Below are positions 4,108 through 56,100 of a DNA stretch of 64,000 bases, one piece after another. The DNA lies in assembly GCA_037447605.1 (NCBI GenBank), contig CM074805.1:1707361-1771360 (forward strand), written 5' to 3'. Origin of the DNA: Zygnema circumcarinatum SAG 698-1b. Taxonomy: Eukaryota > Plantae > Zygnematophyceae. The notes under the pieces are model-generated. The model made no database searches. It was not told where the DNA came from and saw only the letters and a list, made by a program, of their open reading frames with translations. How positions within the stretch are numbered: the first letter of the stretch is position 1; each line of letters opens with the position of its first letter. Both the position numbers and the translations under genes were made by a program.

Positions 4108-7100
4108 ATGGCTTCCCTAAGCGATAGCAGACTGCTTCTCGCTGCCTCACTCTCCGCTGCAGCGGGGGCTGCGATGGTGTTTTTGCTATCTCCATATGAA
4201 AAGAAGCAATTATCCTCCTCTGGCGACAGTAGCCATGGATCCGAAGCCACTACCCGCTCTGCTTCCCCTCCGGAACCACCTGCAACAGACGCTGCTTCGC
4301 AAACGCTCACGAGTGTTCAACAAACTTGGACTTGGCGTTATTCCTTATATTCTGGGACGTTGGCGGCAGCCATGGGAGCGCTTGGAGCAGTTGCTGTTGG
4401 GTATGTTGTCAGTGGGAGGTGGCGGTCGGTGTGGCTTGGTAGGGCATTTCGTGCACGCGTGGTCGGGATAATACCGGCACGTTACCACTCGTCCAGATTT
4501 CCCGGAAAGCCACTAGCCAATATACTAGGGAAGGCAATGATTCAGGTGAGTCAAGGAATCCATGTTATGTGAAGGAATTATTTCTGGCCGTATGTCGATC
4601 TGTGATATCATTGTCTATAGCAGGCACCAATGCATTGAATATTTTGGATAGGCTAGCTTTTTCTGTCTATCTTACAGAATTTGTATTCAACTCTTGAAAT
4701 GCAATCAACTCGCAATGGAACGTGATTTATTGTCCGACGTAGCAGTACTCACCAATAATTTCCGTAAAAATTGTAATGATATCAAAGTATCTGATTTGGA
4801 AGCATTGAAAATGGTAAAACTAATTTTACTTTGCATTGACAGATCAAGTCATAGTATGATAGATAGGCTTCCGCTTATTTCGAATTTCGAATTGTATTGG
4901 GTTTGGGGAGTAGAGGACATGGGAGCAAGCTCGGCAAGCCAAGACACTCGAGGCTGTAGGTTTGTGATCCTTAGAACATTCTTTTCCTGCTTAATTAAGT
5001 ATTTTGCTCTTAATTTCAAGAGAAAATTCTAAAAATCCAGTGCTATTTGGAGTAATTTTTGGAATTTATGTAGAACTTGCTTTTGATCATTCTCCATTTA
5101 GCGCCTGGGAGGGTGAACAACATACAACGTTGATGTAGATGTTTGTTCCAATGCGCAACAAGAAGGTTTTTTTAGAACAGAATAAAAAATCGTTGCATAC
5201 AGCCCTTGTGTTGAATTTATGGGTGAATGCAGAATACAGGGATGTTAGTTCATTTGGCTGTCCTTTTTAAGAGTTATTTGTTGAAGTGCTCATCAAAGTT
5301 GGCTTTCTGAATTTTTGTCCTTCAGTGTTGCTCATGTATTTGTCATTTCAATCCGTTTTTATGTCCAGATGGACCTCAGTGTATTTCATATGGTTGAAAA
5401 TCTTCCTTTACATGTTCCATTCTCGTATCCAAATGCTTATTCCACACTGAGAAATGCTCGCAATGTCATGGGGAGTGAAGGCCAGTTATCGCAACCGATG
5501 ATGAGAGGATCGCCGCCTATTGTCGCGATTTTGGTGCAGAGGTAGTCATGACATCTCCAGAATGTGAAAATGGTCGGTGGCCTGTTCTCAGAATTGCAAT
5601 AATCCCCATATTTGATGTGCTGTTCTGTAGCTGTTGCTCGTTTTTTTCCACTTTGCTAGTGCGTGGATCGAGAAAAGTACTCACATACTGTCGCTCATCA
5701 AGAATGCATTCTTCGATTGACTTGTCGCAGCAATTTATGTTTAAGTGAAGTTAAAGGATCTGAAATCAATATGAAATTCATGCTAGAGGTTAGACATGCT
5801 TCGCACAGGATCATGGACAAGCCAACTCTTTTGGTTTCTTCAAGAAGTGAATGCATGCAATTCAAGAGAACCTCACTAACCACTCGGGCATTGTCGAGTC
5901 ACGTGGTAAGTCCTTGAAACCACGCGCGGCGGCGTCACGTCAGTCGCGCGTCACTAGTTTTCACCAATTTTGGCAATGGAAAGGAAAGAGGGAGGAGAGA
6001 GAATGGAGAAGTACATGAACAGCTTCGAAAGTGTTTGTCAAATTCTAAGCAATGGCGCCATTTGAAGTGGAGATTTCACGTGGGCTATGCTATCGTAATG
6101 CTTCGCGACGTGGACGAGTCATCTAGCACAGCTCCCTTGAGATCTCCACTTCAAATGATGTTGTTGCTTAGGATTTGAAAAGAACTTTCGAAGTTGTTCT
6201 TTTACCTCCCCATTCTCTCTCCTCCCTCTATTTCCTTTCATTACCAAAACTGGTGAATGAATGGTTTGGCACACCTATTCTAAAATTTCGAAGCTTGACG
6301 TTGCGCTCTTGGCGTGCTCCATGACTTCAGGCCAAGTGAAGATGAATGATGAATGGCTGTCTGTGTCACTTTGTTGCCAAAAATGCATTTTTCTTAAGTG
6401 TGAAGATGAGCGCTTTTCTTCTGGAACATATTTGCAGTGTTTGGGAGAATGCTGTGTTTCCCTGTGGTAGATGTTTATTCCACTGTAGTAAGAATTGCTT
6501 GCCTTACTTCGATTCGTACTGAACTCTGAGATAGGGAATTGCAGGCACAGTCCGCTGCTGTGAGGCCATGGAGGCATTGGGCACACAACGATGGGATGCT
6601 GTGGTGAACATTCAAGGCGATGAGCCCCTTGTTGATCCAGCAGCCATTGACGCTGTGGTGATGGCGCTTCAGGTGAGCACATGCAACAGGTTGATGATCC
6701 TGTTGCCTCTTAAACGAGATTATCATCGAAACAACTCTGGTTTCCTACAAATCTGAAAGCACTTCATTGGTTGCTGCTTGGGGTGTGGCTCGAAAAGCAG
6801 TCTCGTAGTAAGCACGCAAGCCTAGGCTAACGACCCTTGCACAAGTTTATTGACGGAGTTCACAGTCAAAGCATTGTTTTCTGGGTGGAACTTTTCTACG
6901 TTTGCCAGATTGATTTTGACTCTGGTTCGTGCTAATGTGAAATTACTCGTAGACAAACTAACTGAGCATGGAGGACAATATTGGCATATGTACTGTGTGT
7001 GTCATGAAGCCCACATTTTTCTTACTTTGTTCTCGCAATTCATATGCCAATTTTTTCTTCAGCAGCTTTGTTCAGAATGCTCAAATAGAAATGTTCCTCT

Positions 7101-13402: not shown

Positions 13403-14321
13403 AGATGACTACCAAACATTCTTTTTGAAAAAATATTTCAAGCAGATTCACATTTGATTGTGTAATGGTAGGCAATGGCCATGGCAATGGTTGATGAGTG
13501 CTTCATTGTTTCAAGGTGATAAACGCGAGAGTAAAACGCTTCAGAGGAAAATGAGGAGTCAAAGCTGGCTGCCATGGCTTCTGCCAGCAAACGTACCCCA
13601 CTAGTGGCGCATGCCAAAGTCTCCAACCTCTGACTTTGAACTTGTGTACAAATTTCAAGAGTTGGAAATGCAGCACATTACTCGAAACAAGCCGAGAGGA
13701 ACTCGGCCCTCTCCCTGCTCTCCTGTCGACTCTCCACTCTCTCCCTCCTCTCCCTCGTCTTCATTTGCCTTTTCTCCCCTCTACTCGCGGCCATCGATGC
13801 CATCCTCACCGCAAGCTCTGTCTACCGCAATGCTCTACTCCCTCGGCGGACATCAGTTCCTCATGGGGTTCTCGTGCACAAATGTGAACGACTTTTTCTC
13901 AAGGCCTCAACGCCTGCGCAGGTGTTGCCTCGACACAACATTTAATTGTTTGCACATACACAGTCAGCCCGCGCGCGAGGCTGATAGAAGTGCGAGCGCA
14001 TCTTTTTCTGCACCTGCACAGGCCCAGGTTGCGCATGAGATCAAAGTGGGGCCTCATCCGAAACACGAAGTGCCAGGAAGGAAGCTGATGGCTGACACCA
14101 AATCATCCCTCACAGACTTACATATGTGAGCGGTTTGTACATTGTTGCTGGATGTTGCGATCTATGCTCCAACGTGGCACCAGATTCCAATGCTTTACCA
14201 AAAATAAGACGGTTTTTGGGGCCTCTCTCTGCAGTAGAGACTCCTCACCAAAGGTCGGCCGCGGTGCCTAAAGCAGCTTCTGAGTTCACGCCAGTTTTAC
14301 ATGATATCGCCAACATAAACT

Positions 14322-24616
<10,295 letters not shown>

Positions 24617-24677
24617 CCTGCCTCCCCGCCCTCCTTCCTGCGGGCTGCTTCAGTGGGAGCCCGCGCTCATGCAGCGC

Positions 24678-24784
24678 AACCCTAACCCTAATCGGGACCC
24701 TAACCCTAATTCAACCCTAACCCTAATTCAACCCTAACCCTAATTCAACCCTAACCCTAATTCAACCCTAACACTCAACCCTAA
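24678..24784. repeat. Telomere-like array, 17-bp unit AACCCTAACCCTAATTC, ~60 nt upstream of the RPC1 ATG
   Basis: Three to four exact units plus degenerate flanking units; hexamer (TTAGGG) type. Confidence 0.9.
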
Positions 24785-24850: not shown

Positions 24851-25060
24851 TGGCGACCATGCCAATGTAAGCAACCAAGACAATGGTTGGCAGCCACGCC
24901 AATGGTAGGCAGGCATGACAATGGTTGGCAACCACGCCAACGGTTGGCGACCACGACAAAGGTTGGCAACCACGCCAATGGTTGGCAACCAAGCCAATGG
25001 TTGGCAGCCACCCCAATGGTTGAAAACCACGCCAATGGTTGGCAACCATGCCAATGGCCG
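24851..25060. repeat. 19-bp minisatellite, consensus CCAATGGTTGGCAACCACG, ~10 copies
   Basis: Units start at ~24880, 24899, 24918, 24937, 24956, 24975, 24994, 25013, 25032. Confidence 0.9.
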
Positions 25061-25289: not shown

Positions 25290-28200
25290 CCGCCGCCGGT
25301 CGCTGCGGGTCCTGCCCCCGCGAATCGCGGCGCGTTCCCCGACAAACGGGGGACTCTTCGGAGAAGATTCGATATCGTGTTCCGGAGTCGCAGGGTCAGC
25401 AACGTGGAGCCATCGCGACCGTTCATTCTACATCGCCGGCCCAGCGTCAATGCATTGACTTTCCAGTCCCTTCAAGTACCGCCAAAGGAACACCCTTTTT
25501 GGGAACTGCAACTCGTGGCCATCGGGACCCGGAAAACGACAGTTCGTCGAAAGGCACAAGACGATAAAATGACCGTCGTCTGGTTTGGCATTGTCCAAAA
25601 AGACAAATCATACGGCGTCAGCTATCTAGCACTTCAACGGAAATGTCCGTGACGTGCCGCATACGACAAACTTCACCACTGTCGTTCTTATCGTATGTGG
25701 AAAGAAAGGACAAACGGCACCGCAGCGCGACCAGACGAAAGGGACCGATGCCGATAAAGAGGCGCCCTCACAGCGACACGTGGCAAAGCGGATCCTGCCA
25801 CGCCCGATCCCCGCCAACGACAAAAACGGCCGCCGCCGCCGCGAGCTGAGAGGGGGAGTGACGACTTCGATAAAGGGAGCACGGCGGGAGAGAGAGAGAG
25901 GCGCGGAGAGGGAGAAAGAGAGGAGCGACGAGAGCGAGGAGAGGAAGGGGGGGAGGAAGGCAGACAGAAGAGAGGGAGGAGGGACGGAAGTGGGAGGAGA
26001 GAGGGAGGGAGACCGGGGAGAGAGAGAGGAGAGTGGGAGGAGACACGCAGGGAGACCGGAGAAAGAGGGAGGAGAGTGGGAGGAGAGAGGCAGGGAGACC
26101 GGAGAGAGAGGGCGGGGAGTGGGAGACAGGCACGAGTAGGAGAGGAGCGATGGGTCTCGGTGTGGTTTGTCGCCTTCTGGCGGTTGCAGTTCTGCATGCG
26201 GCCGCTGCGAGTGCAGCGCGAGAGCCAAAGCAAGAGGCAAAAGTCCCCGCGGTGTTCGTTTTGGGGGACAGCACGACGGACGCGGGCAACAACAACTACA
26301 TCCCCGACCCCATCTACCACGCCAACAACCCGCCCAACGGCCAGGACTTCATCCCAAGCAGCGGCCGCTTCGCGAATGGAAAGCTCATCGTCGACTACCT
26401 TTGTGAGTGCTCATGCGTGTCACGTCACACCTTCTAAATCACCTTGTAAGCCAGAGAGGAGCAAAAAACAGTAGGCTCGGCTGCAAGCCTACGAATCGCC
26501 AAATCTACGAATGTGGCTCTAGAGCCGTCCGCCTAGCTTCAATAACACGCCTGTTTCGTGTGCAATGTTGTCAACAGGCGACATGTTGAAGTTGCCGTAC
26601 GCCCCCCCATACCTTCAGCCCGGGGCCGATTTCAGGTATGGAGTGAACTTCGCTTCGGCAGGCTCAGGCGTTCTGAATGCCACCCATGCCGGCAGGACCA
26701 TCTCCTTCGGTATGCAGCAGGACAATTTTGACAAGTTATTTAAGGACCCATCGGCGTACAACCTCACTCACGAGGTAATCCTGAGCTGAGAATGAAAGAT
26801 TCACAATTCTGATCTGTTTGGGGCCGACTTTACTGAGCAGCAAATGTTGTGAGGGCCGTCGAGTGGAGAGATTAGGAATGCTGGCAGGTGTGGGAGTGCT
26901 CGAGAATCCATTACTCACTTGTCACTTCAAGCGGTTGCGCATCTGTGCAGACACTTCAAGACGCGCTGTACTACATCTCAATTACCGCCAATGATTACAT
27001 CGTGTACATAACGTCACCAGATCTTCAAACCACTATTTCATTCAACGACTACAAAATGAAAGTCGTGAAAGGCGTCATCAGTGGCATTAAGGTACGGCTC
27101 CGACGACATATATTCAGGCCCATGCGTGCACTCAACTATGCTTAGCTCTCTCATACCAACGGTCCTTACATGTTCAGTTCAAAAGTCGTAGTTGTCACAA
27201 GGCTTCATTCCTCCAAGGTCGATTCGAAATAGAAACGAAAGATTTACCCACGTGGTATTTTCCATGAGGAAATTTTCCACTCTCCCACAAAATCTCTCTT
27301 TGTTTTTGAACTGCTCTGGCCCAATTCACGCACAATGGCGAGTTCACCGTCAGAACTCCGAATTCATGTATCGAAAAAATCCGGAAAAATGACCAGCTCT
27401 AATCATTCTAAGCATTCTTACCTGGGAATGGACGACTATACGAGTGCAGAATCTGTACTCGAAAGGAGCAAGGAAGATTATCGTTGAAGGAATTCCCGCC
27501 CTCGGGTGTGCGCCCGCCATTTCGCTCGCGTTCAATGCGCAGCCAAAAGGCAAGTGCGTGAAGCAAGTGCAGGACATCATGGCGGCCCACAATGCTGCTC
27601 TGAGGCCCGCCCTGAAGGCGCTTGCTAAAGCTCTTCCCGCCCTCAAGCTCACCTTCTCCGTCGCCTTCTACGAGATCCAGCTCGAAGCCGCCTTGACGCC
27701 GCTTCGATACGGTGAGTCCCGCCAGCCTCGCCGGTCCTTGCACGCCCTTGCAGTCAGCCATGCAGTGAGGCAGTCAGTCAGTCTGACGGTGGGCGGGCGG
27801 GCGAGGGAGGGTTCAGGGTTCGAGGACGGGCGGACGGCGTGCTGCGGCGTGGGGCCGTTCGGCGGCGTCGTGATGTGCGGGCAGTACGCGCTGTACGGCG
27901 GCGCGAACGTGACGACGACGACGTGCGCGGCCCCGGACAAGTTCGCGTTCTGGGACTACTTCCACCCGTCCTCGGCGGCCTATCAGGTCATGGCGCGCGC
28001 CATGTGGACCGGCGAGCGGGGCCGCATCGCGCCGTACACTGTGCGGGCCCTCGCCATGGCGTGAGGCGTGGCATGGGAGCTTGCCGGGGAAGATTTTGCT
28101 TATTATTAGCTCACCATTTTAAAATTATGGGAATCAAGGAGCGTGTTGTCTAGGGATTGGATACATGTACGACAACTCGCTGAATTAGAGCGAACTAGGA

Positions 28201-28537
28201 TGGACATTATTTACAAAGTTTTGAGTCGTATTGATGAGTTCAAAACTGACTTCGTTGTAATTTTTGAAATACATCTTAAAATACTCGGGTTCCATATCAG
28301 TCAAGATGTTGATTTCGTCCTCAATCTAACCAACGTGAATAATGAGCGAATAGTTGTTCAAGTTCATCGAGGTGCGCCAAATCGTATTGATGGCGGTGTC
28401 CTGAATCATAAATAGAATAAAAGCGACGTGAAGGATAATGTGAAAAGTGGCAAATGACCAAAAGTAACCTAAATGCTATTAGCCGAACAACATGGATCAA
28501 GAACCCTTACCGTAATTCCCTCCCCAACCCTAATTCA
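25290..28537 (+). repeat. Left arm of a large inverted duplication (GDSL locus with promoter and 3' flank)
   Basis: Matches the reverse complement of ~30635-34000 from CGCCGGTCGCTGCGGGTCCTGC to CAAGAACCCTTACCGTAATTCCCTCCCCAACCCTAATTCA. Confidence 0.9.
26150..28064 (+). CDS. GDSL esterase/lipase with signal peptide; exons 26150-26402, 26578-26774, 26951-27091, 27450-27711, 27817-28064
   Basis: Signal peptide MGLGVVCRLLAVAVLHAAAASA; block I VFVLGDSTTDAGN; GRFANGKLIVDY; GVNFASAGSG; ANDY; block V FWDYFHPS; five-exon structure typical of plant GDSL genes. Confidence 0.92.
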
Positions 28538-29070
28538 TACCCAAACCCCAATTCAAACCCTAACTCTACTTCAAGCCTCAACCGCAGTTCAGACCCTCAC
28601 CCTAATTCAAACCCTAACCGTAATTTGAACATAAACCGGAATCTTTGCCTGAACCCTAATTCACGCCTCCACTTTTAATCAAACCCTACCTCTATTCCGA
28701 ACCATAACCCAAATTCGAACCCCAATCCAAATTCGAACCTCTACCCCAAATTCACGCCTCACCTTAATTCAAACCCTAACTGTACTCCGAGCCATAACCC
28801 TAATTCGGACCCTAGCCCTAGTTCAAACCCTAACTGTTACCCAAACCATACACTCAATTCGGACCTTAACCCTAATTAACCCCAAACCCTAATTGAAACC
28901 CCAACCGTAATTCCCACCCTAACCCTAAGTCAAATCATAACCGTACTCCGAAGCATAACTCTAATTCAAACCCTAACATTAATTCGAACCCTAACCTGAA
29001 CTCAAATCCTAAAGAAAGTTGAAACCCTAAAACCGAATTCGAACACTGACCCTAATTCACTCAACCCTCC
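28520..29070. repeat. Degenerate interstitial telomere-like array (AACCCT/AATTCA hexamer periodicity)
   Basis: Repeated CCCTAATTCAAACCCTAAC words; translates to PN-rich pseudo-ORF. Confidence 0.85.
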
Positions 29071-29323
29071 ATCCTCCAGCGGACCTGCAACCCTAACTGC
29101 CAAGTGGCAGCCCCGGATTGGCTGCCCCTTCGGCTCAGCCAACCGGTGGCATACCGCGCTACCCGCCATACAATAAGCATACTGTACTATTACCCGTACA
29201 TTCGTACAGTTCGACCAAATCTCACAAACATCCTGTGTACGGATATCCGTACACCAACACAATCGTACACTTCGACCAAATCCCACAATGTTGGCTGTAC
29301 GGCGATCCGTACACCAACAGCTA

Positions 29324-29895
29324 CAGTAGGACCCCATCATATTTTCCACCTGGTTTTAGCAAATATATCCGGCGAAAATATTGTTTTTGGCAAATATCAG
29401 GTCTGTGTTACCAAAGAGGCGAGCGGAATTATGTTAGAGTTCATGAATGCCCGTACGTATCGTATCGTATCGTTTTATGACATATCGTACCGCATCGTAC
29501 CGTATCGTATCGTGGCAACTGACACTATGGTGGCCTCTTGCGGCGGCAAGGGCGGGAAAATTCGGAGAGTTTAAAATTCGAGCCTATAACGGCTCTAAAG
29601 CTCGTACGGCTAGTAAGGATAGTACCGTATCGGGGCGTTTCGTATCGTATCGTATCATATCGAAGCCAAGAACAAGGGGAGAAGAGTGAGCGCCTCTTAC
29701 GGCGGCACGGGCGGGGAGATTAGGTGAGTTTTGCGTAAGCCCGTGACGGCTAGTACAGCTAGTACGGATAGTACGGATAAAACGGATAGTACGGCTAACA
29801 CAAAGTTACCGTACAAAAAAGTGGTTTCGGCAAAATTGGTGCGAATTTCTTGAGGACGCACTTTTGGAGATGGAAAATATGATGGGGTCCTACTG
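29324..29895. mobile_element. 572-bp non-autonomous Tc1/mariner (pogo-like) MITE
   Basis: Perfect 25-bp TIRs CAGTAGGACCCCATCATATTTTCCA / TGGAAAATATGATGGGGTCCTACTG flanked by TA at 29322-29323 and 29896-29897; no transposase ORF. Confidence 0.9.
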
Positions 29896-30634
29896 TACCG
29901 GACCTGTTCGCTCCCCTTGTCTTTGTCCAAGTCCCTCGCGCTTACGCCTGTCCCGTTCTCTATCCTTTCCACTCTCATTTTTTCACCTCTATCCATAATC
30001 TCTCTTTCCCTATGATTACATCTTGCTTTTGCTCTCTCGCTCACCTTTAATTTTTCTTTCCCTTTCTCCTAACTCTCTTTGTCCCTCTCTCTCCCACCCT
30101 CCCTTTTAATTAAGCGATACTTGCCACTGGAGGAGGGGGGGCAATAGGGCACGGGGAAAAGAAGCTTTTGAATCTCTTGAAGTCACTTCGCAAGGTGTCA
30201 ACCTCATTCGATGTTCTCAGTACATTCCATTACTTCAGGTATCTTTTTCCTCCCCTAGATCCTGTCGCCACCACCATTGATTCTTTTTTTATGTTTCTCT
30301 TTCTCAGTTCGATAGTGCTGCCTTTCTTTCTCCCATCACCTCTCTCGCATTCTCCACGATTTTTCCCTCCCTCTCACTCTCCCCCTCCCTATCCCTCCCT
30401 CTCCCTGCTCTCCTGCTCCCTCTCCCTCTCCCACACCATCTCCCTCTTCACTCTCGCTTGCCCACTCCCTCTCTTCCTCCCTTTCTCCCCCTCCGAGTGC
30501 CCGGCCTGCTGACGTACGCAAAACGTCAGAAAGACCTTTATTAACGTTGACAACGGATCCTTAATGCGAAGGAAGGGGGATGTAATATTGATCTCGCGAT
30601 GGCGATGCCTGAAAGAATAAATGCCAATGTTATT

Positions 30635-33600
30635 TGAATTAAGGTTGGGGAGTGAGTTACGGTAAGGGTTCTTGATACATGTTGTTCGGGCTCTGCCAAT
30701 AGCATCCTATTGCATTAGCATCCAGCTAACTTTTAGTTATTTGTCACTTTTCTCGTTATCCTTCACGTTGCTTTTATTCTATTTATGTTTCAGGACACCG
30801 CCATCGATACAATTCATGCGGAGGCGCACCTCGATTGACTTGAACAACAATTCGCCCATTATCACGTTGGTTGGATTGGGGACGAAACTAACATCTTGAT
30901 TGATATGGAAGCCGAGTAATTTAAGATGTATTACGAAAAATTACAAAGAAGTAAGTTTTGAACTCATCGATACGACTCAAAACTTGGCAAATAATGTCCA
31001 TCGTAGTTTGCTTGAATTCAGCGAGTTGTCGTACATGTATCCGATCCCTAGACAACATGCTCCTTGAGTCCCATAATTTAAGAATGGAGAGTAATCATCC
31101 CTATTTGTAATAAGCAAAATCTTCCCCGGCAAGCTCCCATGCCACGCCTCACGCCATGGCGAGGGCCCGCACAGTGTACGGCGCGATGCGGCCCCGCTCG
31201 CCGGTCCACATGGCGCGCGCCATGACCTGATAGGCCGCCGAGGACGGGTGGAAGTAGTCCCAGAACGCGAACTTGTCCGGGGCCGCGCACGTCGTCGTCG
31301 TCACGTTCGCGCCGCCGTACAGCGCGTACTGCCCGCACATCACGACGCCGCCGAACGGCCCCACGCCGCAGCACGCCGTCCGCCCGTCCTCGAACCCTGA
31401 ACCCTCCCTCGCCCGCCCGCCCACCGTCAGACTGACTGACTGCCTCACTGCATGGCTGACTGCAAGGGCGTGCAAGGACCGGCGAGGCTGGCGGGACTCA
31501 CCGTATCGAAGCGGCGTCAAGGCGGCTTCGAGCTGGATCTCGTAGAAGGCGACGGAGAAGGTGAGCTTGAGGGCGGGAAGAGCGCTCGCAAGCGCCTGCA
31601 AGGCTGGCCTCAGAGCAGCGTTGTGGGCCGCCATGATGTCCTGCACTTGCTGCACGCACTGGTCTGTGGTCTGCGCATTGAACGCGAGCGAAATGGCGGG
31701 TGCACACCCGAGGGCGGGAATTCCTTCAACGATAATCTTCCTTGCTCCTTTCGAGTACAGATTCTGCACTCGTATAGTCGTCCATTCCCACGTAAGAATA
31801 ATGTAGATTAGTGCTGGTCATTTTTCGGATTTGTACATGAATTTGGAGTTCTGAAGGTGTGTGCATGAATTGGGCCAGAGCAGTTCAAATTAAAAGGAAA
31901 CATTTTGTGGGAGAGTGGGAACTTTCCTCATGGAAAATACCACGTGGGTAAATCTTTCGTTTCTATTTCGAATCGACCTTGGAGGAATGAAGACTTGTGA
32001 CAACTACGACTTTTGAACTGAACATGTCAGGACCGTTTGTATGAGAAAGCTAAGCTCAGTTGAGTGCACGCAAGGGCCTGAATATATGTCGTCGGAGCCG
32101 TACGTTAATGCCACTGATGACGCCTTCCACGACTTTCATTTTGTAGTCGTCGAATGAAATAGCGGCTTGAAGATCTGGCGACGTTATGTAGACGATGTAA
32201 TCATTGGCGGTAATTGAGATGTAGTACAGCGCGTCTTGAAGTGTCTGCACAGATGCGCAACCGCTTGAAGTGACAAGTGAGTAATGGATTCTCGAGCACT
32301 CCCACACCTGCCAGCATTCCTAATCTCTCCACTCGACGGCCCTCACAACATTTGCTGCTCAGTAAAGTCGGCCCCAAACAGATCAGAATTGTGAATCTTT
32401 CATTCTCAGCTCAGGATTACCTCGTGAGTGAGGTTGTACGCCGATGGGTTCTTAAATAACTTGTCAAAATTGTCCTGCTGCATACCGAAGGAGATGGTCC
32501 TGCCGGCATGGGTGGCATTCAGAACGCCTGAGCCTGCCGAAGCGAAGTTCACTCCATACCTGAAATCGGCCCCGGGCTGAAGGTATGGGGGGGCGTACGG
32601 CAACTTCAACATGTCGCCTGTTGACAACATTGCACACGAAACAGGCGTGTTATTGAAGCTAGGCGGACGGCTCTAGAGCCACATTTGTAGATTTGGCGAT
32701 TCGTAGGCTTGCAGCCGAGCCTACTGTTTTTTGCTCCTCTCGCTGAGATTGTGATTTAGAAGGTGAGATGTGATACGCATGAGCACTCACAGAGGTAGTC
32801 GACGATGAGCTTTCCATTCGCGAAGCGGCCGCTGCTTGGGATGAAGTCCTGGCCGTTGGGCGGGTTGTTGGCGTGGTAGATGGGGTCGGGGATGTAGTTG
32901 TTGTTGCCCGCGTCCGTCGTGCTGCTCCTCTCCTTGTCCTCGTGCCTGTCTCCCACTCTCCTCCCACTCTCTCCGATCTCCCTTCCTCTCTTCTTCCACT
33001 CTCCTGCCTGTCTCCTCCCATTCTCATCCCTCGTCTCTCTCTTCTGTCTGCCTTCCTCCCTTCCTTCCTCTCCTCGCTCTCGTCCCTCCTCTCTCTCTCT
33101 TGTCTGCCTTCCTTCCTCCCTTCCTCACCTCGCTCTCTCCCTCCTCTCTCTCTCCTGTCTGCCTTCCTCGCTCCCTTTCTCTCCTCGCTCTCGTCCCTCT
33201 CTCTCTCCTGTCTGCCTTCCTCCCTCCCTTCCTCTCCTCGCTCTCGTACCTCCTCCCTCTGTCCTGTCTGCCTTCCTTCCTAGCTGCCTCTCCTCGCTCT
33301 CGTCCCTCCTCTCTCTCGCTTGTCTGCCTTCCTCTCCCCCTCCCTCTCCGCCTCTCGCTCTCTCTCCCGCCGCCGTGATCCCTTTATCGAAGTCGTCACT
33401 CCCTCTATCTGCGCGCAGCGGCGGCGGCCGTTATTGCCGTTCGCGGGGATCGGGCGCGGCAGGATCTTGCCTCGCCACGTGTCGCTCTGAGGGCGCCTTT
33501 TTGTCGACATCGTCCCTTCCGTCTGGTCGCGTTGCGGCACCGTTTGTTCTTTGTCATACGATAAATTGATCGCGGCAGAGTTTGTCGTATGGGGTAGGTC

Positions 33601-34000
33601 TCTTACATGACATGACTCTTCCGTTGACATGCTAGAAAACTGACACCGTATGGTTTGTCTTTTCTGGGGTAGTGTCAAATGAGACGACGGCCATTTTGTC
33701 GTGATGTGCCTGTCAACGAACTGTCGTCTTCGTGATTCCGATGGTTACGTTTTGCAAAGTCCAAATGTCGCGTCACTGAGGAAGTACCTCGCCCCTTGAT
33801 TCTCGCGATCCGGTCAACGGCTGAGATCGCAATCCGTCTTAAGATCGGCCGGCAATCGGATAACGGAACGGTTGCCGGCACCTGGCTGACTCGGCAGACT
33901 CCGCAACACGACAGGCGTGCGTCCGGCGCGAGTCTTCCTGGAGGGTCCTCCCTTTTGTCCCGATTCGCGGGTTGCAGGACCCGTAGCGACCGGCGGGGGC
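30635..34000 (-). repeat. Right arm of the inverted duplication
   Basis: Reverse complement of ~25290-28537; near-identical over the 3' part of the gene, more diverged upstream. Confidence 0.9.
31149..32923 (-). pseudogene. Inverted GDSL paralog lacking ATG, signal peptide and VFVLGD of block I
   Basis: Relative to copy A, 121 bp (A 26149-26269) are missing, giving GGAGAGGAGC|AGCACGACGGACGCG; exons 2-5 and splice sites are intact and stop-free; the only in-frame upstream start I found is GTG at 32956. Confidence 0.72.
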
Positions 34001-46264: not shown

Positions 46265-46490
46265 CGGAGGGAGGGAGGAGGGAGGCGCGGGAGGAGAGAG
46301 ACAGGGGAGCGGGAGAGGAGGCGAGGGAGGGAGGGTGAAGAGAGGAGAGCAGGAGAGGAGGAGCGGGAGGAGAGAGACAGGGGAGCGGGAGAGGAGGCGG
46401 GGGAGGGAGGGAGAGGAGAGGAGAGCAGGAGAGGAGGAGGAGCGGGAGAAGGGGATAGGAGAAGAGAAAGCGCAGGCGACCGGAGGTGAG
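46265..46490. repeat. Purine-rich degenerate repeat (~75-bp period), probably the 5' leader of the 47348 gene
   Basis: GAGAGACAGGGGAGCGGGAGAGGAGGC occurs twice; followed by a plausible GT donor near 46498. Confidence 0.55.
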
Positions 46491-48241: not shown

Positions 48242-48271
48242 GGTCATGCTTTTGAGGCGCCTGATAGGGAG

Positions 48272-48612
48272 AGGAAGTGGGAGAGAGGGAGCAGGGGGAG
48301 GGAGAGAAGTGGGAGAGAGGGAGCAGCGGGAGGGAGAGGAGGGAGTGGGAGCGAGGGAGCAGCGGGAGGGAGAGGAGGAAGTGGGAGAGAGGGAGCAGCG
48401 GGAGGGAGAGGAGGGAGTGGGAGAGAGGGAGCAGCGGGAGGGAGAGGAGGAAGTGGGAGGGAGGGAGCAGCGGGAGGGAGAGGAGGGAGTGGGAGAGAGG
48501 GAGCAGCGGGAGGGAGAGGAGGGAGTGAGAGAGAGGGAGCAGCGGGAGGGAGAGGAGGAAGTGGGAGGGAGGGAGCAGCGGGAGGGAGAGGTGGAAGTGG
48601 GAGAGAGGGAGA
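48272..48612. repeat. 36-bp minisatellite (GTGGGAGAGAGGGAGCAGCGGGAGGGAGAGGAGG(G/A)A), ~9-10 copies
   Basis: 12-codon periodicity visible in the spurious ORFs (GEREQREGEEGV)n; starts ~30 nt after the 48241 stop. Confidence 0.9.
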
Positions 48613-49685: not shown

Positions 49686-50294
49686 ATGGCAGCATCATTA
49701 GTCGCAGGCATGGCATCCATGGCCATTTGCGCTGGCCCTGCAGCTAGCTCTGGGCTTACATTGAGGCAAGATAGGGCGGCTGCAAGCCTGATTGTAAATA
49801 TTGGGCAATTATCTCGCTCAGAATTCATAGGCTCATCAAAGGCGTTATGCAGCTCCGTAGGTTGCAAGAGCAACATGAAACAGCGCCAGGGTTTGTCACA
49901 CGTTTCCCCTATTGCAATGGCCTTGGCGACTGGGGAGGAAGCGGTGGAAACGGAGAAAAGCGCCAGGGCTTTCCTTAAGGGTTTGCGCATGTCCCCAATG
50001 AAGCTTCGCCGGGTGGTGAACCAGGTTCGCGGAAGGACGTACGAGGACATCCTCATGATCTTGCAGTTCATGCCCTACCGCGCCTGCTTGCCTGTGTACG
50101 ACTTGGTGCTCTCTTGTGCTGCCAATGCCGAGAACAATTTGGGCCTCAAAAAGAGCGATCTGTACGTCAGTGAAGCTCTGGTGGATGCAGGGCCCACACT
50201 TAAGAGATTTCAGCCTAGGGCACAGGGCCGAGGGTTTCCAATTCGCAAGAGGACTTGCCGCGTTACCATCATCATGAAGCAGGTTGCAAAATAG
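49686..50294 (+). CDS. rpl22: Nuclear-encoded plastid-type 50S ribosomal protein L22 with N-terminal transit peptide
   Basis: ~90-aa Ala/Ser-rich presequence then ARAFLKGLRMSPMKLRRVVNQVRGR...AANAENN...VDAGPTLKRFQPRAQGRGFPIRKRTCRVTI; PRAQGR is the cyanobacterial/plastid signature; acceptor TGCAG in the 5' leader near 49649. Confidence 0.9.
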   Translation: MAASLVAGMASMAICAGPAASSGLTLRQDRAAASLIVNIGQLSRSEFIGSSKALCSSVGCKSNMKQRQGLSHVSPIAMALATGEEAVETEKSARAFLKGLRMSPMKLRRVVNQVRGRTYEDILMILQFMPYRACLPVYDLVLSCAANAENNLGLKKSDLYVSEALVDAGPTLKRFQPRAQGRGFPIRKRTCRVTIIMKQVAK

Positions 50295-51138
50295 ATGATA
50301 TTTGATAAGGCTGATTATTATGTTAGGGGATGAATCGGAAATTATTCAGGTTGCAGACGCTAGCTGGAGCTCAACGGGTTAATTGAACTCGCATTTGTAG
50401 GTCTGCTTGGCAGGCAAAGGCAAACTTGAGCTCAATTCTTTCGGCATTTCAGATGATGAGGAACTTTGGGTTGGGCCCTTTCGATTTGTTCTGCATTTTG
50501 GCATCTTGAGTGTATGTGGCTGGCTTGTTATTCGTGCTCCTGTTGGGCACTTAGACTGAGCTTTGATGAGGATATTCAGGTAGGACAGATTATTCGTTTC
50601 TCATTGTGGACAGTCCAATAAGTCATGCACATCGTGGCAAAATGATCACAAGCTAGAAACAACAATATGTTATCTGTTATCTTTCGCTTCCTCAAGAGCG
50701 AGTCAAAGAGGCCGATCTCTTTTCTCCTTTTTTTCCAAATCGTACGCCAAGCTTTACTTTAAAAACTTCTCAGGAATTTATCTTGTTGGAGTTTGTTGCA
50801 TTTGACCGTTGCTCCCCATTGGCCAGTGCGACAGACACAGACACACTGACTGACACAGATCCGGTGCACAGATTATACAGTTTCCTGCAATTTGCACGCA
50901 AAAATGGTGCTTGTAGGAAGCATCTTACCCTAAAGCTTCGTAGCAGTCTTCAGTATCACACCAGATAGCGGTTGCAGAAACCGCCATGGCTGCAACAACC
51001 AGGAGCTGCAGCATGCAGGAACTCGGGATCCTACCCATCTACAAAAAAGGCTACCCTCTCTCGCTCTCTCCCCCTCCCTCCCTCTCGCTCTCTCACTCTC
51101 TCTCCCTCTCTCTCTCGCTCTCACTCCCTCATAGTTTG

Positions 51139-51670
51139 CTGACCGTGTGCGCCAACCATTGGCGCAGGGCTGGCCGTGTGCGCCAACCATTCGCACAGGG
51201 TATTGCTGCAGGGCTGACCGTGTGCGCCAACCATTGGCGCAGGGTATTGGTGCAGGGCTGACAGTGTGCGCCAACCATTGGCGCAGGGCTGGCCGTGTGC
51301 GCCAACCATTGGCGCAGGGTATTGGTGACAGGGCTGACCGTGTGCGCCAACCATTGGCGCAGGGTATTGGTGTAGGGCTGACAGTGTGCGCCAACCATTG
51401 GCGCAGGGTGTTGGTGCAAGGCTGGCCGTGTGCGCCAACCATTGGCACAGGGTATTGGTGTCAGAGCTGACCGTATGCGCCAACCACTGGCGCAGGGTTG
51501 GCCGTGTGCGCCAACCATTGGCGCAGGGCTGACCGTGTGCGCCAACCATTGGCGCTGGGCTGGCCGTGTGCGCCAACCATTGGCGCAGGGCTGGCCGTGT
51601 GCGCCAACCACTGGCGCAGGGCTGACAGTGTGCGCCAACCATTGGCGCAGGGCTGGCCGTGTGCGCCAAC
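51139..51670 (+). repeat. Tandem array of 14 full plus 1 partial palindromes TGCGCCAACCATTGGCGCA; 31-bp and 44/45-bp units
   Basis: Palindromes at ~51148, 51179, 51223, 51267, 51298, 51343, 51387, 51431, 51476, 51507, 51538, 51569, 51600, 51631, 51662. Confidence 0.95.
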
Positions 51671-52265
51671 GATCTGGACCGTCAGTTGACAAACAACCAA
51701 CCATTGGATTCAAATTGTCTATCAACCATTGGTTCCGAACCAAGCTAGCCATTGTCAGTGCAACCATGCCAACCGTTGCTAATGGCTACAAATCTTGGTT
51801 CGCGATCTAGCCAACCATTGGCACTGTATGCAACCATTGGATCAATGGTTGCCAGATTGTCAATGCTTCGTCCGAAGTTTCAGTCGGAGTGGACATTTTG
51901 CGCTTTCGAAGTACCGTAGTGGCTGCCAGCCATGAAATGCGTCCAAGTTTGGCAACCATTGCCAATGGTTGGAACCATTGAAAAGCGGACAAGCCAAATC
52001 GGACGTTGGAACCATTGGATTCAATGAATGCCAACCATTGGCAATGGTTCATACCCAACGGTTGAAAAGACTTAATGGGTGCTACCTTCTGTCATATTTT
52101 TACTAGTCGTTTTCCCAGCCAAGTTCATAGCCAATATCAAGTGACTAATGGCGGGCTTTCTTCCACTTTGACCTCAGTGCTGTGTTGCAGTGAGAACTTT
52201 TGCAGCTAGCAGTTAGGGTTTGCTGGAATCTACAGTATTTAGATTTGCTGGATGCTATTGCAGCT

Positions 52266-52439
52266 TGCGCCAATGGTTGGCGCACACGGTCAGCCCTGCA
52301 CCAATACCCTGTTCCAATGGTTGGCGCACACGGTCAGCCCTGCACCAATACCTTGTGCCAATAGTTGGCGCACACGGCCAGCCCTGCGCCAATGGTTGGC
52401 GCACACGGCCAGCCCTGCGCCAATGGTTGGCGCACACGG
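52266..52439 (-). repeat. Five copies of the same unit in inverted orientation
   Basis: TGCGCCAATGGTTGGCGCA-CACGG(T/C)CAGCCC, including two long units carrying TGCACCAATACC. Confidence 0.93.
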
Positions 52440-53167: not shown

Positions 53168-56100
53168 ATGGCGTGCCTCTGCAAGCACTCTGCCGGCGTC
53201 GTGGGGCAGGAATTGGTTGCGGAGCGACCGAGGAGCGTGGTAGGGAGAGATGCTGCTGGAGAAGGGCGGAGGAACTTGCGGAGAGGCTTTTGCGGGGAAG
53301 GCATTTTGGGAGCTTCTGAAGGGGGAAAGGCTCAGAAGGGGAGGAGGGTTCGCGTGACGGCTGTTGTTGATTATGAACGAATGAACGCTGCAGCCAGCAC
53401 GAGGAAGCAAGGTGAGCCAAAGCTATGCATTCTGCAGCAACAGTAGCTCAAGACATTTGCTGTTATTTTTATATGGGTGGCTTGGACCACGCTATTGCTT
53501 GTAGCTATTTGAGAAAGCATCATGACTGATCCTAGACAAATGCGGAAGAAAACATCGTCCGGCATATTTTAATGATCTCAGTAACAAATGTCGTTAGGTG
53601 AGAGGGTATCAAACAATAGTGGGGTACGCCAATTGGAGCTGAGTGCCTTGCATTTGAATGAGCCTCAAGGAGTCAATGGAAACCATTATCATTGCAAGAA
53701 TACGTATGACCTTAAAATTGATCGTAGCAAATGCCAATCTGATGTTGATTTGGAATATCATCGGTCTCGTAACCTTTGTGATACTTTTATGTCGAAAGTT
53801 ATATCAATCTGAAGCATGTAGGTATTTTTTGACCTGCCTACGCAGAGGTCACACTTTTGGACTATGGGGCTGGAAATGTGCGGAGCGTGAGGAATGCCAT
53901 CAACCTCCTTGGCTACAATATTCGTGATGTAATCCACAGCCCCTTAACCCACAGTCCGTTTTTCTAACCCGGCATCTTCTTCACAAAACTACCTTTCAGT
54001 CGAAGTCCTTTTCGTAGACAAATTTATCTTTTCTTCATCATGTTTTACCCTGGTCTAGCATTTTAGGCTGCCCTTTTTTCTCCTCGAACCTCCTGGGGTT
54101 TGGAATGAAGGGTGTCATTTTTGCCACTATGTGCGCTGCTTCACGAATGCTTGTCGCACGCAAGGTTTATCAAGTAATTGCTTTACCGCAAGTTCTTTCA
54201 TTTCCTGATAAATTGTAGGCAACGCTGGTCTGTTTTATCAGCGCATTTGTCAAGCATTCGACTACGGCTTTCTTTTAAAGGTGATAGGTGTGTTTTGCAG
54301 AAGAGTTTTTTGAGGTAGAGAGGTAGTGATAGGGACTTATTTGGGGGTTGCCCAGGTCAGGTCTGCACAGCTGAAGACATTCTGAAGGCAGAGAAGCTTA
54401 TTTTCCCTGGAGTAGGAGCCTTTGCGGCTGCTATGGACGTGGTCAATAATAAAAGGTTTGTCGTTTAACTTTGTAATCGTTCAGCCAAATGGACAAAGCA
54501 AAAAAAGTGACAGCCGTTAGTTGATAAATTCTTAAAATACTAATGTGCAGCTTGCTGTATGAGTGCCGATTGTCTGCTATAGCTTCAGATGAGAATATTG
54601 CTGTCCCAGTATCTAAGCATCATCAAGCCCAAACACTGACAATTGGTGGGCGTTTATGGTTTATGCGTTACAGAATAGCTGAAGCTATCCGGGAGTACAT
54701 CCGTTCAGATCGTCCATTTTTGGGAATCTGCCTTGGAATGCAGTTGCTCTTTGAAGGAAGCACAGAGTTTGGCTCTGGTGAGGACTGGATGCTTGTACCG
54801 CCGTTTCCAGTGCTTGGTCCTGTCTGGTCCGTTATATGCAATATGTGAGGTCAAGCTTACTTTTGGTGACCTTTGGAATGAGACTGAGACAATTTTTTAA
54901 ATTGTTTGACGTTTTTGTGCCGGTTGCTTGCAGTGGAAGGTCTTGGCATCATCCCTGGCATTGTAGACAAGTTTGATACGTCCTTGGGCATCCCTGTACC
55001 GCACATTGGCTGGAATGGCGTAAATCTTCAACAGTCAAGCTCGAGTCTGGAGGGAGTAAATGGTCGCCATGTGTACTTTGTGCACTCATACCGTGCTGTG
55101 CCTGTACGCTTCTGCCCTAAACTGGGTAACGTAATACTGTAGCTGGTGAAGTTCCAACTTCTAGTCAAGTTCTCGATCTGCTTATATTTGTGGTTCATGG
55201 TGACCGATGCAGACAATTCTGCTGTGCTTATATGAACACGCAGTTGGTAGCATGTTAAGAGCAAGTTAAGTTCACAAGCAATTGTTGTGTTCTTCGAGCT
55301 TACTCATTTACCGTGGATGGAATACATTGCTGCGCTTATGATGTACATTCAAAATATGTGCTGATTGGAATCTTCTTGGCATTTGACAGAGTGACGCCAA
55401 TAAGGAATGGGTGTCTTCAACAACCACTTACGGCGGTCAATTCATCTCTGCTGTAAAGAAGGGAAATGTTGAAGCCGTACAATTCCACCCAGAAAAGAGC
55501 GGAGGTATAAAAGCTGAGAATTGCCTAACTCTTTATGATGACCTTGTGGGTTGGTCCTCCCTTTTTCTGAACTATCAGCGCTATGCATACTTCCGCTTGA
55601 TCTTAGACGTCTTTCGCTAGAAAAATGAGACAGAAGGCGCTGTAGTTTCTGCCTGTAAAATAACGAAGGAAAAGAGTCGCAACTACTGTTGTTTATCATG
55701 TATCACCTATGGATCATTCCTGCTTGTTCTCTACCTGCTGTTTGTTTAGCCCCAAATGGAAGCGTTTGTGTTGTTGGCAGTGGTGGGACTGGACATTCTG
55801 CGACGATTTCTGGGACCTGTGCGTTCAGAGGCTGCAGAGGTAATGATTCCATATGATGTCGCTAGTTTGTGGCAACATTGTGTGGTGATACTGGTCGTTC
55901 AATGAATAGATTTCTAGCACTACAAGGAGACGTAGACCATTCTCATTGGTTTTCTATCGTCTCCGGTTTTGAAAAGCCTCGGCAGGGACTCTGCTTTACC
56001 CGATGGAAGTTGTGACTCATTGAAGTAGAGTTGTTTGGATGTGATGGTTCTGTGTCCAGGCAGTTGCAAAAGCCTCGACGGAAGCAATAGGACGAAAGCC

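Follow-up and report, generated by a model that had tools for sequence, protein, structure and literature searches.

Inverted hairpin-palindrome arrays upstream of a HISN4-like gene in the green alga Zygnema: a candidate relic of a foldback-type transposon

Introduction

Transposons with long inverted arms built of tandem subrepeats have been described in both animals and plants. Potter's 1982 account of the FB elements of Drosophila reportedly gave them 10-, 20- and 31-bp periodicities, and Windsor and Waddell are said to have described FARE of Arabidopsis in 2000 as part of a Mutator/Foldback group. The subterminal regions of DNA transposons to which transposase binds, as in Ac, En/Spm and P/Galileo, are marked by short motifs that are irregularly spaced and face either way. 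Foldback elements as a class are defined by long terminal inverted repeats (TIRs) with internal tandem repeats and by a variable, non-coding middle domain; rearranged copies are commoner than intact ones, and satellite arrays can arise from the arms (PMC4079207). In Galileo, a member of the P superfamily in Drosophila, the tandem repeats of the TIRs reportedly multiply the transposase-binding sites (PMC3573991; Marzo 2013 via PMC4079207), and Tm1 of root-knot nematodes is reported as a foldback-type element (PMC3169594).

The locus described here lies in a 64-kb stretch of Zygnema DNA, the whole of which was analysed and is called the window below. Like FB and like Tetris of D. virilis, it has inverted arms of short tandem subrepeats, a unit length that shifts along the arm, arms of unequal length and a variable, non-coding middle; copies of FB and Tetris that are judged complete, however, have 8-10-bp target-site duplications (TSDs) and defined outer TIR domains, and the Zygnema element has neither. 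It also differs from them in its green-alga host, in having units that are themselves hairpin palindromes, and in lacking any sequence similarity to them. Galileo is likewise reported to multiply a short motif (protein-binding in that case) through tandem repeats in long TIRs and to have structurally very dynamic arms, but it has a THAP-domain transposase, a 7-bp TSD and autonomous copies, whereas the element has no TSD and the ORFs scanned hold no transposase domain. FARE and Tm1 reportedly resemble the element in being non-autonomous, in having little besides inverted arms with subterminal repeats and in often lying near genes, but they have 9-bp TSDs and a link to Mutator-type transposases, neither of which was found here. 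A literature search for foldback transposons in streptophyte and chlorophyte algae found no description.

Two further systems are relevant since they concern the motifs that the units carry. The ERSE, with the form CCAAT-N9-CCACG (CCAAT-N10-CACG in plants), is bound by NF-Y together with a bZIP factor; it occurs as single or few sites per promoter with a free spacer, whereas the element has a conserved spacer (GGTTGG...), is a minisatellite and has core copies without CACG. The likeness is a pattern match only. In Brassicaceae, MITEs amplify E2F sites (PMC5950925). Like the element, these MITEs are repeats that place a motif with a transcription-factor consensus near genes, but they are short, high-copy elements with TIRs and TSDs whose genome-wide enrichment has been demonstrated, whereas the element is one locus here with a loose E2F match.

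Results

Layout of the element and its arms

The repeat region (51138-52439, 1302 nt or ~1.3 kb) is non-coding and consists of two inverted arrays with a middle domain between them (Table 1). Its units carry a palindrome, TGCGCCAA-CCA-TTGGCGCA, of 19 bp with 8-bp arms and a 3-nt loop, for which there are 19 matches at two or fewer mismatches, 14 on the plus strand (51148-51649) and five on the minus strand (52266-52434), against 0 expected from shuffles of the window. A fifteenth unit in the left arm starts at 51661 and is cut at 51670, within the palindrome loop; the inner boundary on the other side, 52266, is a palindrome edge, and the gap between the arrays (51671-52265) measures 595 bp.

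Table 1. Positions of the element, its parts, the related array and the upstream gene in the window.
Feature	Position	Strand	Description
Left arm	51138-51670	+	533 bp; 14 full units (31 or 44/45 bp) and a partial unit at each end; 19-bp palindrome per unit
Middle domain, motif-rich part	51671-52060	.	~11 copies of (C)CAACCATTGG, mostly +, some inverted, several spaced 19 bp
Middle domain, motif-free part	52061-52265	.	resembles nothing else in the window
Right arm	52266-52439	-	174 bp; five units, innermost palindrome truncated at inner edge
Related solitary array, separate from the element	24851-25057	-	~11 units of 19 bp; consensus CCAAT-N9-CCACG
uL22 ribosomal-protein gene, upstream of the element	49686-50294		Ribosomal_L22 domain

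From outer to inner end, the units of the left arm measure 31, 44, 44, 31, 45, 44, 44 and 45 bp and then six times 31 bp before the truncated unit, and those of the right arm 31, 31, 44 and 44 bp before the truncated palindrome. The 44/45-bp unit is the 31-bp unit with an additional 13-14 bp, and in this extra module the neighbouring ATTGGCGCAGGG(T) is repeated in degenerate form (TRF period 13). Tandem periods of 31, 44, 75 and 89 are found by TRF, and with its head-to-tail units and higher-order blocks the array is a minisatellite. The higher-order block, of ~120 bp (31+44+44), occurs twice in the outer 240 bp of the left arm (51147-51265 and 51266-51385, 95.8% identical to each other) and once in the right arm, where it is 93.3% identical to each left-arm copy. 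The longest arm pair, 51138-51285 with 52266-52413, spans 148 nt at 95% complementarity, and the two sides pair in register with unit type as well as with the spacer variants (G, A and ACA types).

Since the 31-44-44 block is present in both arms, in that order and at 93-96% identity, the arms have a common origin: both clearly derive from one ~120-bp block of that composition, and the left arm has since expanded and is now three times as long as the right. A single unit folded as DNA gives an 8-bp hairpin at -9.4 kcal/mol, and the predicted fold of the full 1302-nt single strand pairs the two arms with each other (-456.7 kcal/mol).

The middle domain and the shared word

The motif-rich core of the middle domain adjoins the left arm only. 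It holds eight copies of AACCATTG, three of CAATGGTT and two AACCGTTG variants, and recurrence there is limited to words within CCAACCATTGG (7-11 times), the other 7- and 8-mers of the 31-bp unit being present 0-1 times. Because only these internal words recur, the arrays and the core have one word of ~11 bp in common and nothing else. The 11-bp word, CCAATGGTTGG, is a small palindrome (CCAA-NNN-TTGG), and no other sequence is found alike in the arrays, in the middle domain and in a second array at a distance of 26 kb (described below). A profile of the 19-bp unit of that second array matches the core at 51809-51854 and at 51943-51976 (E 1e-4 for each), and the core words are relics that resemble that array, which lies at 24.9 kb. 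By analogy, the pattern of motifs in the core could also be likened to a transposase-binding subterminal region. The last 200 bp of the middle domain (52061-52265) are without the shared word.

An account of this DNA made from its letters alone (the sequence-only reading) had counted fifteen palindrome copies facing one way and five the other, some 595 bp apart, had described units of 31 and 44/45 bp that differ by an added module and are found in both arrays, and had proposed that the arrays share an origin and that about ten further words lie between them. All of this is borne out, with the refinements that the fifteenth copy is the truncated one and that the module measures 13 or 14 bp.

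In the middle domain we found no ORF beyond translations of the repeats, no Pfam domain, no tRNA and no Rfam family above threshold; a snoRNA match in the core, at 23 bits where the gathering score is 60, was rejected. Just outside the left arm (51132-51139) stands the word TTTGCTG(G)A, which is found again twice just inside the right arm (52219-52232 and 52244-52257), possibly by chance.

A related array of 19-bp units

The second array (24851-25057) belongs to the upstream region of a gene for the largest subunit of an RNA polymerase, 240-450 bp from its ATG (~24612, minus strand), and it corresponds to one arm only. At 16 of 19 positions the consensus of its unit agrees with the palindromic portion of the 31-bp unit. 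Profiles made from the two arrays find each other reciprocally (E 6e-5 to 4e-4) and also find the core, with E values of 6e-5 to 4e-3 overall; across the 64-kb window they find nothing further except a marginal site at 13464-13493. In the 19-bp unit the palindrome has arms of only 5 bp (-2.7 kcal/mol), and the 31-bp unit differs from it on both palindrome arms, extending the palindrome to 8 bp. The CCAATGGTTGG word clusters at two places in the window, the element and this array. Since the word and its close context recur 26 kb away and are elsewhere in the 64 kb only at chance level, we regard them as a dispersed sequence family and not as a general promoter word.

The marginal site, on the minus strand, carries CAACCATTGCC, GGCCATTGCC and TACCATT at ~12-bp spacing; it may be a relic of the word family, and at a profile E of 0.009 it could also be chance. 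A telomere-like array of 17-bp units (24677-24772) adjoins the 19-bp array, and neither of the two lies more than 450 bp upstream of the RNA-polymerase ATG.

Transcription-factor site patterns

The units contain CCAAT, and ATTGGCGC fits WTTSSCSS, the loose 8-mer that serves as the plant E2F consensus; both are pattern matches. The sequence-only reading had drawn attention to both motifs, and the patterns do match as it said, but its E2F interpretation is weakened, since so loose a consensus is common elsewhere: there are 13 matches in the element and 40 in the other 62.7 kb of the window. The ERSE-like composite CCAAT-N10-CACG is a tighter match than E2F. At the level of pattern, 13 array units carry it exactly (minus strand), where 0.4 would be expected in the window, and the 19-bp array has CCAAT-N9-CCACG as its exact consensus, with seven units at no more than one mismatch (one exact, six with one). 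The CCAAT-N10-CACG composite is nevertheless broken in about seven of 18 array units, and its positions show no more conservation than the remaining ones; the core copies retain the CCAAT half with six of the "spacer" bases and have lost the CACG half. As a general promoter word, CCAAT-N9-CCACG was rejected, with six one-mismatch matches outside the arrays where 3.7 are expected in the window. What is conserved is the 11-mer, not an ERSE-type composite.

Termini, transposase and other copies

With long inverted arms of tandem subrepeats around a non-coding middle domain, the element has the features by which foldback elements are recognized. Its ends are another matter. Reading of the junctions at 51138/51143 and 52439 turned up no direct repeat in the 2-10 bp range, and the flanks, compared with each other, share chance-level words only, with no inverted repeat extending past the arrays. 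The two outer ends differ: the left arm opens with nine unit bases (GCTGACCGT), and the right arm stops flush at CCGT, with mismatching bases beyond. Because both a TSD and equivalent termini are lacking, we do not class the element as an intact foldback member.

No transposase domain was found in the six ORFs scanned among the eight of at least 220 aa in the window, nor in the ORFs around the 25-34 kb inverted duplication. That duplication (25500-33765) is large, its arms reaching 848 nt with 98% identity. ORFs of the GDSL-lipase type (27444-28064 and its mirror) lie in it, telomere-like arrays occupy its centre (28522-29058), and its central ORFs are without a Pfam transposase domain. Scans for the palindrome gave nine single chance matches and no array in metagenome contigs, and 15 single chance matches and no array in viral contigs. 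A 212-aa ORF of the array had no match in a word-indexed protein search. Eight weak HMMER matches to this ORF were rejected as relatives, being translations of unrelated tandem repeats; the best of them (P0001, SRA read set SRR5688500) has a different 31-bp unit that agrees, in its most favourable register, at 17 of 31 bases, close to what chance would give. The P0001 repeat unit also has a palindrome with 8-bp arms and a 3-nt loop as well as the word ATGGTTGG, and is a structural look-alike whose kinship is not demonstrable.

Two other kinds of repeat in the window may be mentioned. A small foldback or MITE-like element lies at ~5955-6262, with 106-nt arms at 82% complementarity and a 31-nt loop; by eye, its inverted repeat reaches outward to about 5955 and 6262. 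CT/GA-rich microsatellites and purine-rich minisatellites of 36-76 bp are frequent (51054-51130, 48271-48611, 46275-46448, 21420-21658 and 17015-17151), and one such repeat abuts the left end of the element.

Gene surroundings

The gene downstream of the element encodes GATase and His_biosynth domains and is an imidazole-glycerol-phosphate synthase (IGP-synthase) gene of the HISN4 type. A putative transit-peptide exon of this gene has its ATG at 53168, 729 bp past the right end of the element, and the first recognizable HisH-type exon (the HisH N-terminus) lies at ~53845, about 1.4 kb past that end. Through the element, the DNA 0.7-2 kb upstream of the HISN4-like gene carries ~30 CCAAT boxes as well as 13 composites of the form CCAAT-N10-CACG.

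Discussion

We read 51138-52439 as the relic of a non-autonomous DNA transposon of the foldback type, in which each arm is an expandable array of a putative protein-binding palindrome, a reading to which we give a probability of about 0.5. It is favoured because the inverted arms of tandem subrepeats, the variable non-coding middle and the unequal arms match the published definition of the class. The predicted pairing of arm with arm, the lack of any coding or RNA match, the single word common to arrays and core, and the recurrence of that word 26 kb away also speak for it. On the other side stand the missing TSD, the unequal ends, a motif-rich core that borders the left arm only, the lack of a transposase domain in the ORFs scanned and of further copies in the metagenome, viral and protein collections, and a related array that has just one arm. 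In the transposon account CCAATGGTTGG would be a protein-binding site, most simply for a transposase encoded elsewhere, and its repetition in the arms would provide more binding sites; the arms would have grown and shrunk through replication slippage and unequal exchange, both favoured by the hairpins. The element would by now be immobile, because its outer ends are unequal and no TSD is left, and the CCAAT boxes and composites upstream of the HISN4-like gene would be a side effect. The sequence-only reading had likewise seen a foldback-like anatomy, had found no TSD or recognizable terminus and had placed the locus ~730 bp upstream of HISN4, and in these respects we agree with it. Its verdict that this is the best candidate in the window for an undescribed mobile or regulatory system was overstated: the structural class, foldback, is already well known, and what the element offers is tidy evidence for stepwise unit growth.

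The same anatomy could have arisen without any transposition. A minisatellite may have grown in place, from the CCAAT word through 19- and 31-bp units to units of 44 bp, after which template switching at the palindromes would have produced an inverted copy of a ~180-bp piece at a distance of 600 bp, without anything having moved as a unit. Such a history would account for the absent TSD and the unequal outer ends, and both inner boundaries lie at or in a palindrome, as breaks or template switches provoked by hairpins would leave them; growth of the unit by partial self-duplication can be seen in the 13-bp module, and the large inverted duplication at 25.5-33.8 kb indicates that such rearrangements happen in this genome. 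What speaks against it is that a related array with the same core of 13-16 bases, most of the "N9" spacer included, stands 26 kb away at an unrelated promoter, so that either dispersal or a second, independent expansion of that word is needed. Outside the arrays the word shows no enrichment in the window (the six matches against 3.7 expected given above), and the overall shape is exactly foldback-like. We consider growth in place the main rival, though less likely than the transposon relic. A mis-join of long reads or haplotypes that created the inverted arm is highly improbable: inverted tandem arrays are indeed hard to assemble, but artefact is made unlikely by arms that differ from each other by 5-7% and in unit number, and the middle domain is unique sequence with both junctions to the flanking DNA clean.

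Whichever way it originated, the array might have been retained for the host's purposes, as a homotypic cluster in which NF-Y (CCAAT) sites are joined either by a bZIP-type CACG half-site, spaced as in the ERSE, or by E2F sites, and which would control the IGP-synthase gene downstream; this would be compatible with either origin. The 13 units that are exactly CCAAT-N10-CACG where 0.4 are expected, the exact CCAAT-N9-CCACG consensus of the 19-bp array and the location of both arrays upstream of genes are consistent with such a role, and amplification of transcription-factor sites by transposable elements, E2F sites included, is documented in plants (PMC5950925). Yet the positions of the composite are not preferentially conserved and some seven of 18 units have it broken, the sites in the core are without the CACG half, the composite is not enriched in the window outside the arrays, the E2F consensus is loose enough to match 40 times elsewhere, and the distance to the putative ATG is 0.7-2 kb. 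Retention for regulation seems to us decidedly unlikely.

For annotation, the region is best treated as repeat DNA, neither gene nor RNA. If it is the relic of a foldback-type transposon, it would be a clean example of how foldback arms grow, in which units lengthen from 19 bp through 31 bp to 44 bp, a block of higher order arises and the arms become unequal, and it would extend the foldback class to a green alga, none having been described in the literature searched. Dense CCAAT-type sites and cruciform-prone DNA at 0.7-2 kb upstream of a histidine-biosynthesis gene could affect its expression or the stability of the DNA around it. A more speculative and, in our view, unlikely proposition is that CCAATGGTTGG is a genuine protein-binding site that a foldback-type family has carried and amplified, seeding NF-Y/ERSE-like arrays before housekeeping genes of this streptophyte-lineage alga. 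Were that so, foldback-type elements with CCAATGGTTGG would be vehicles of promoter wiring, in which one palindrome serves both the element, through its transposase or the formation of hairpins, and the host, as a landing pad for transcription factors.
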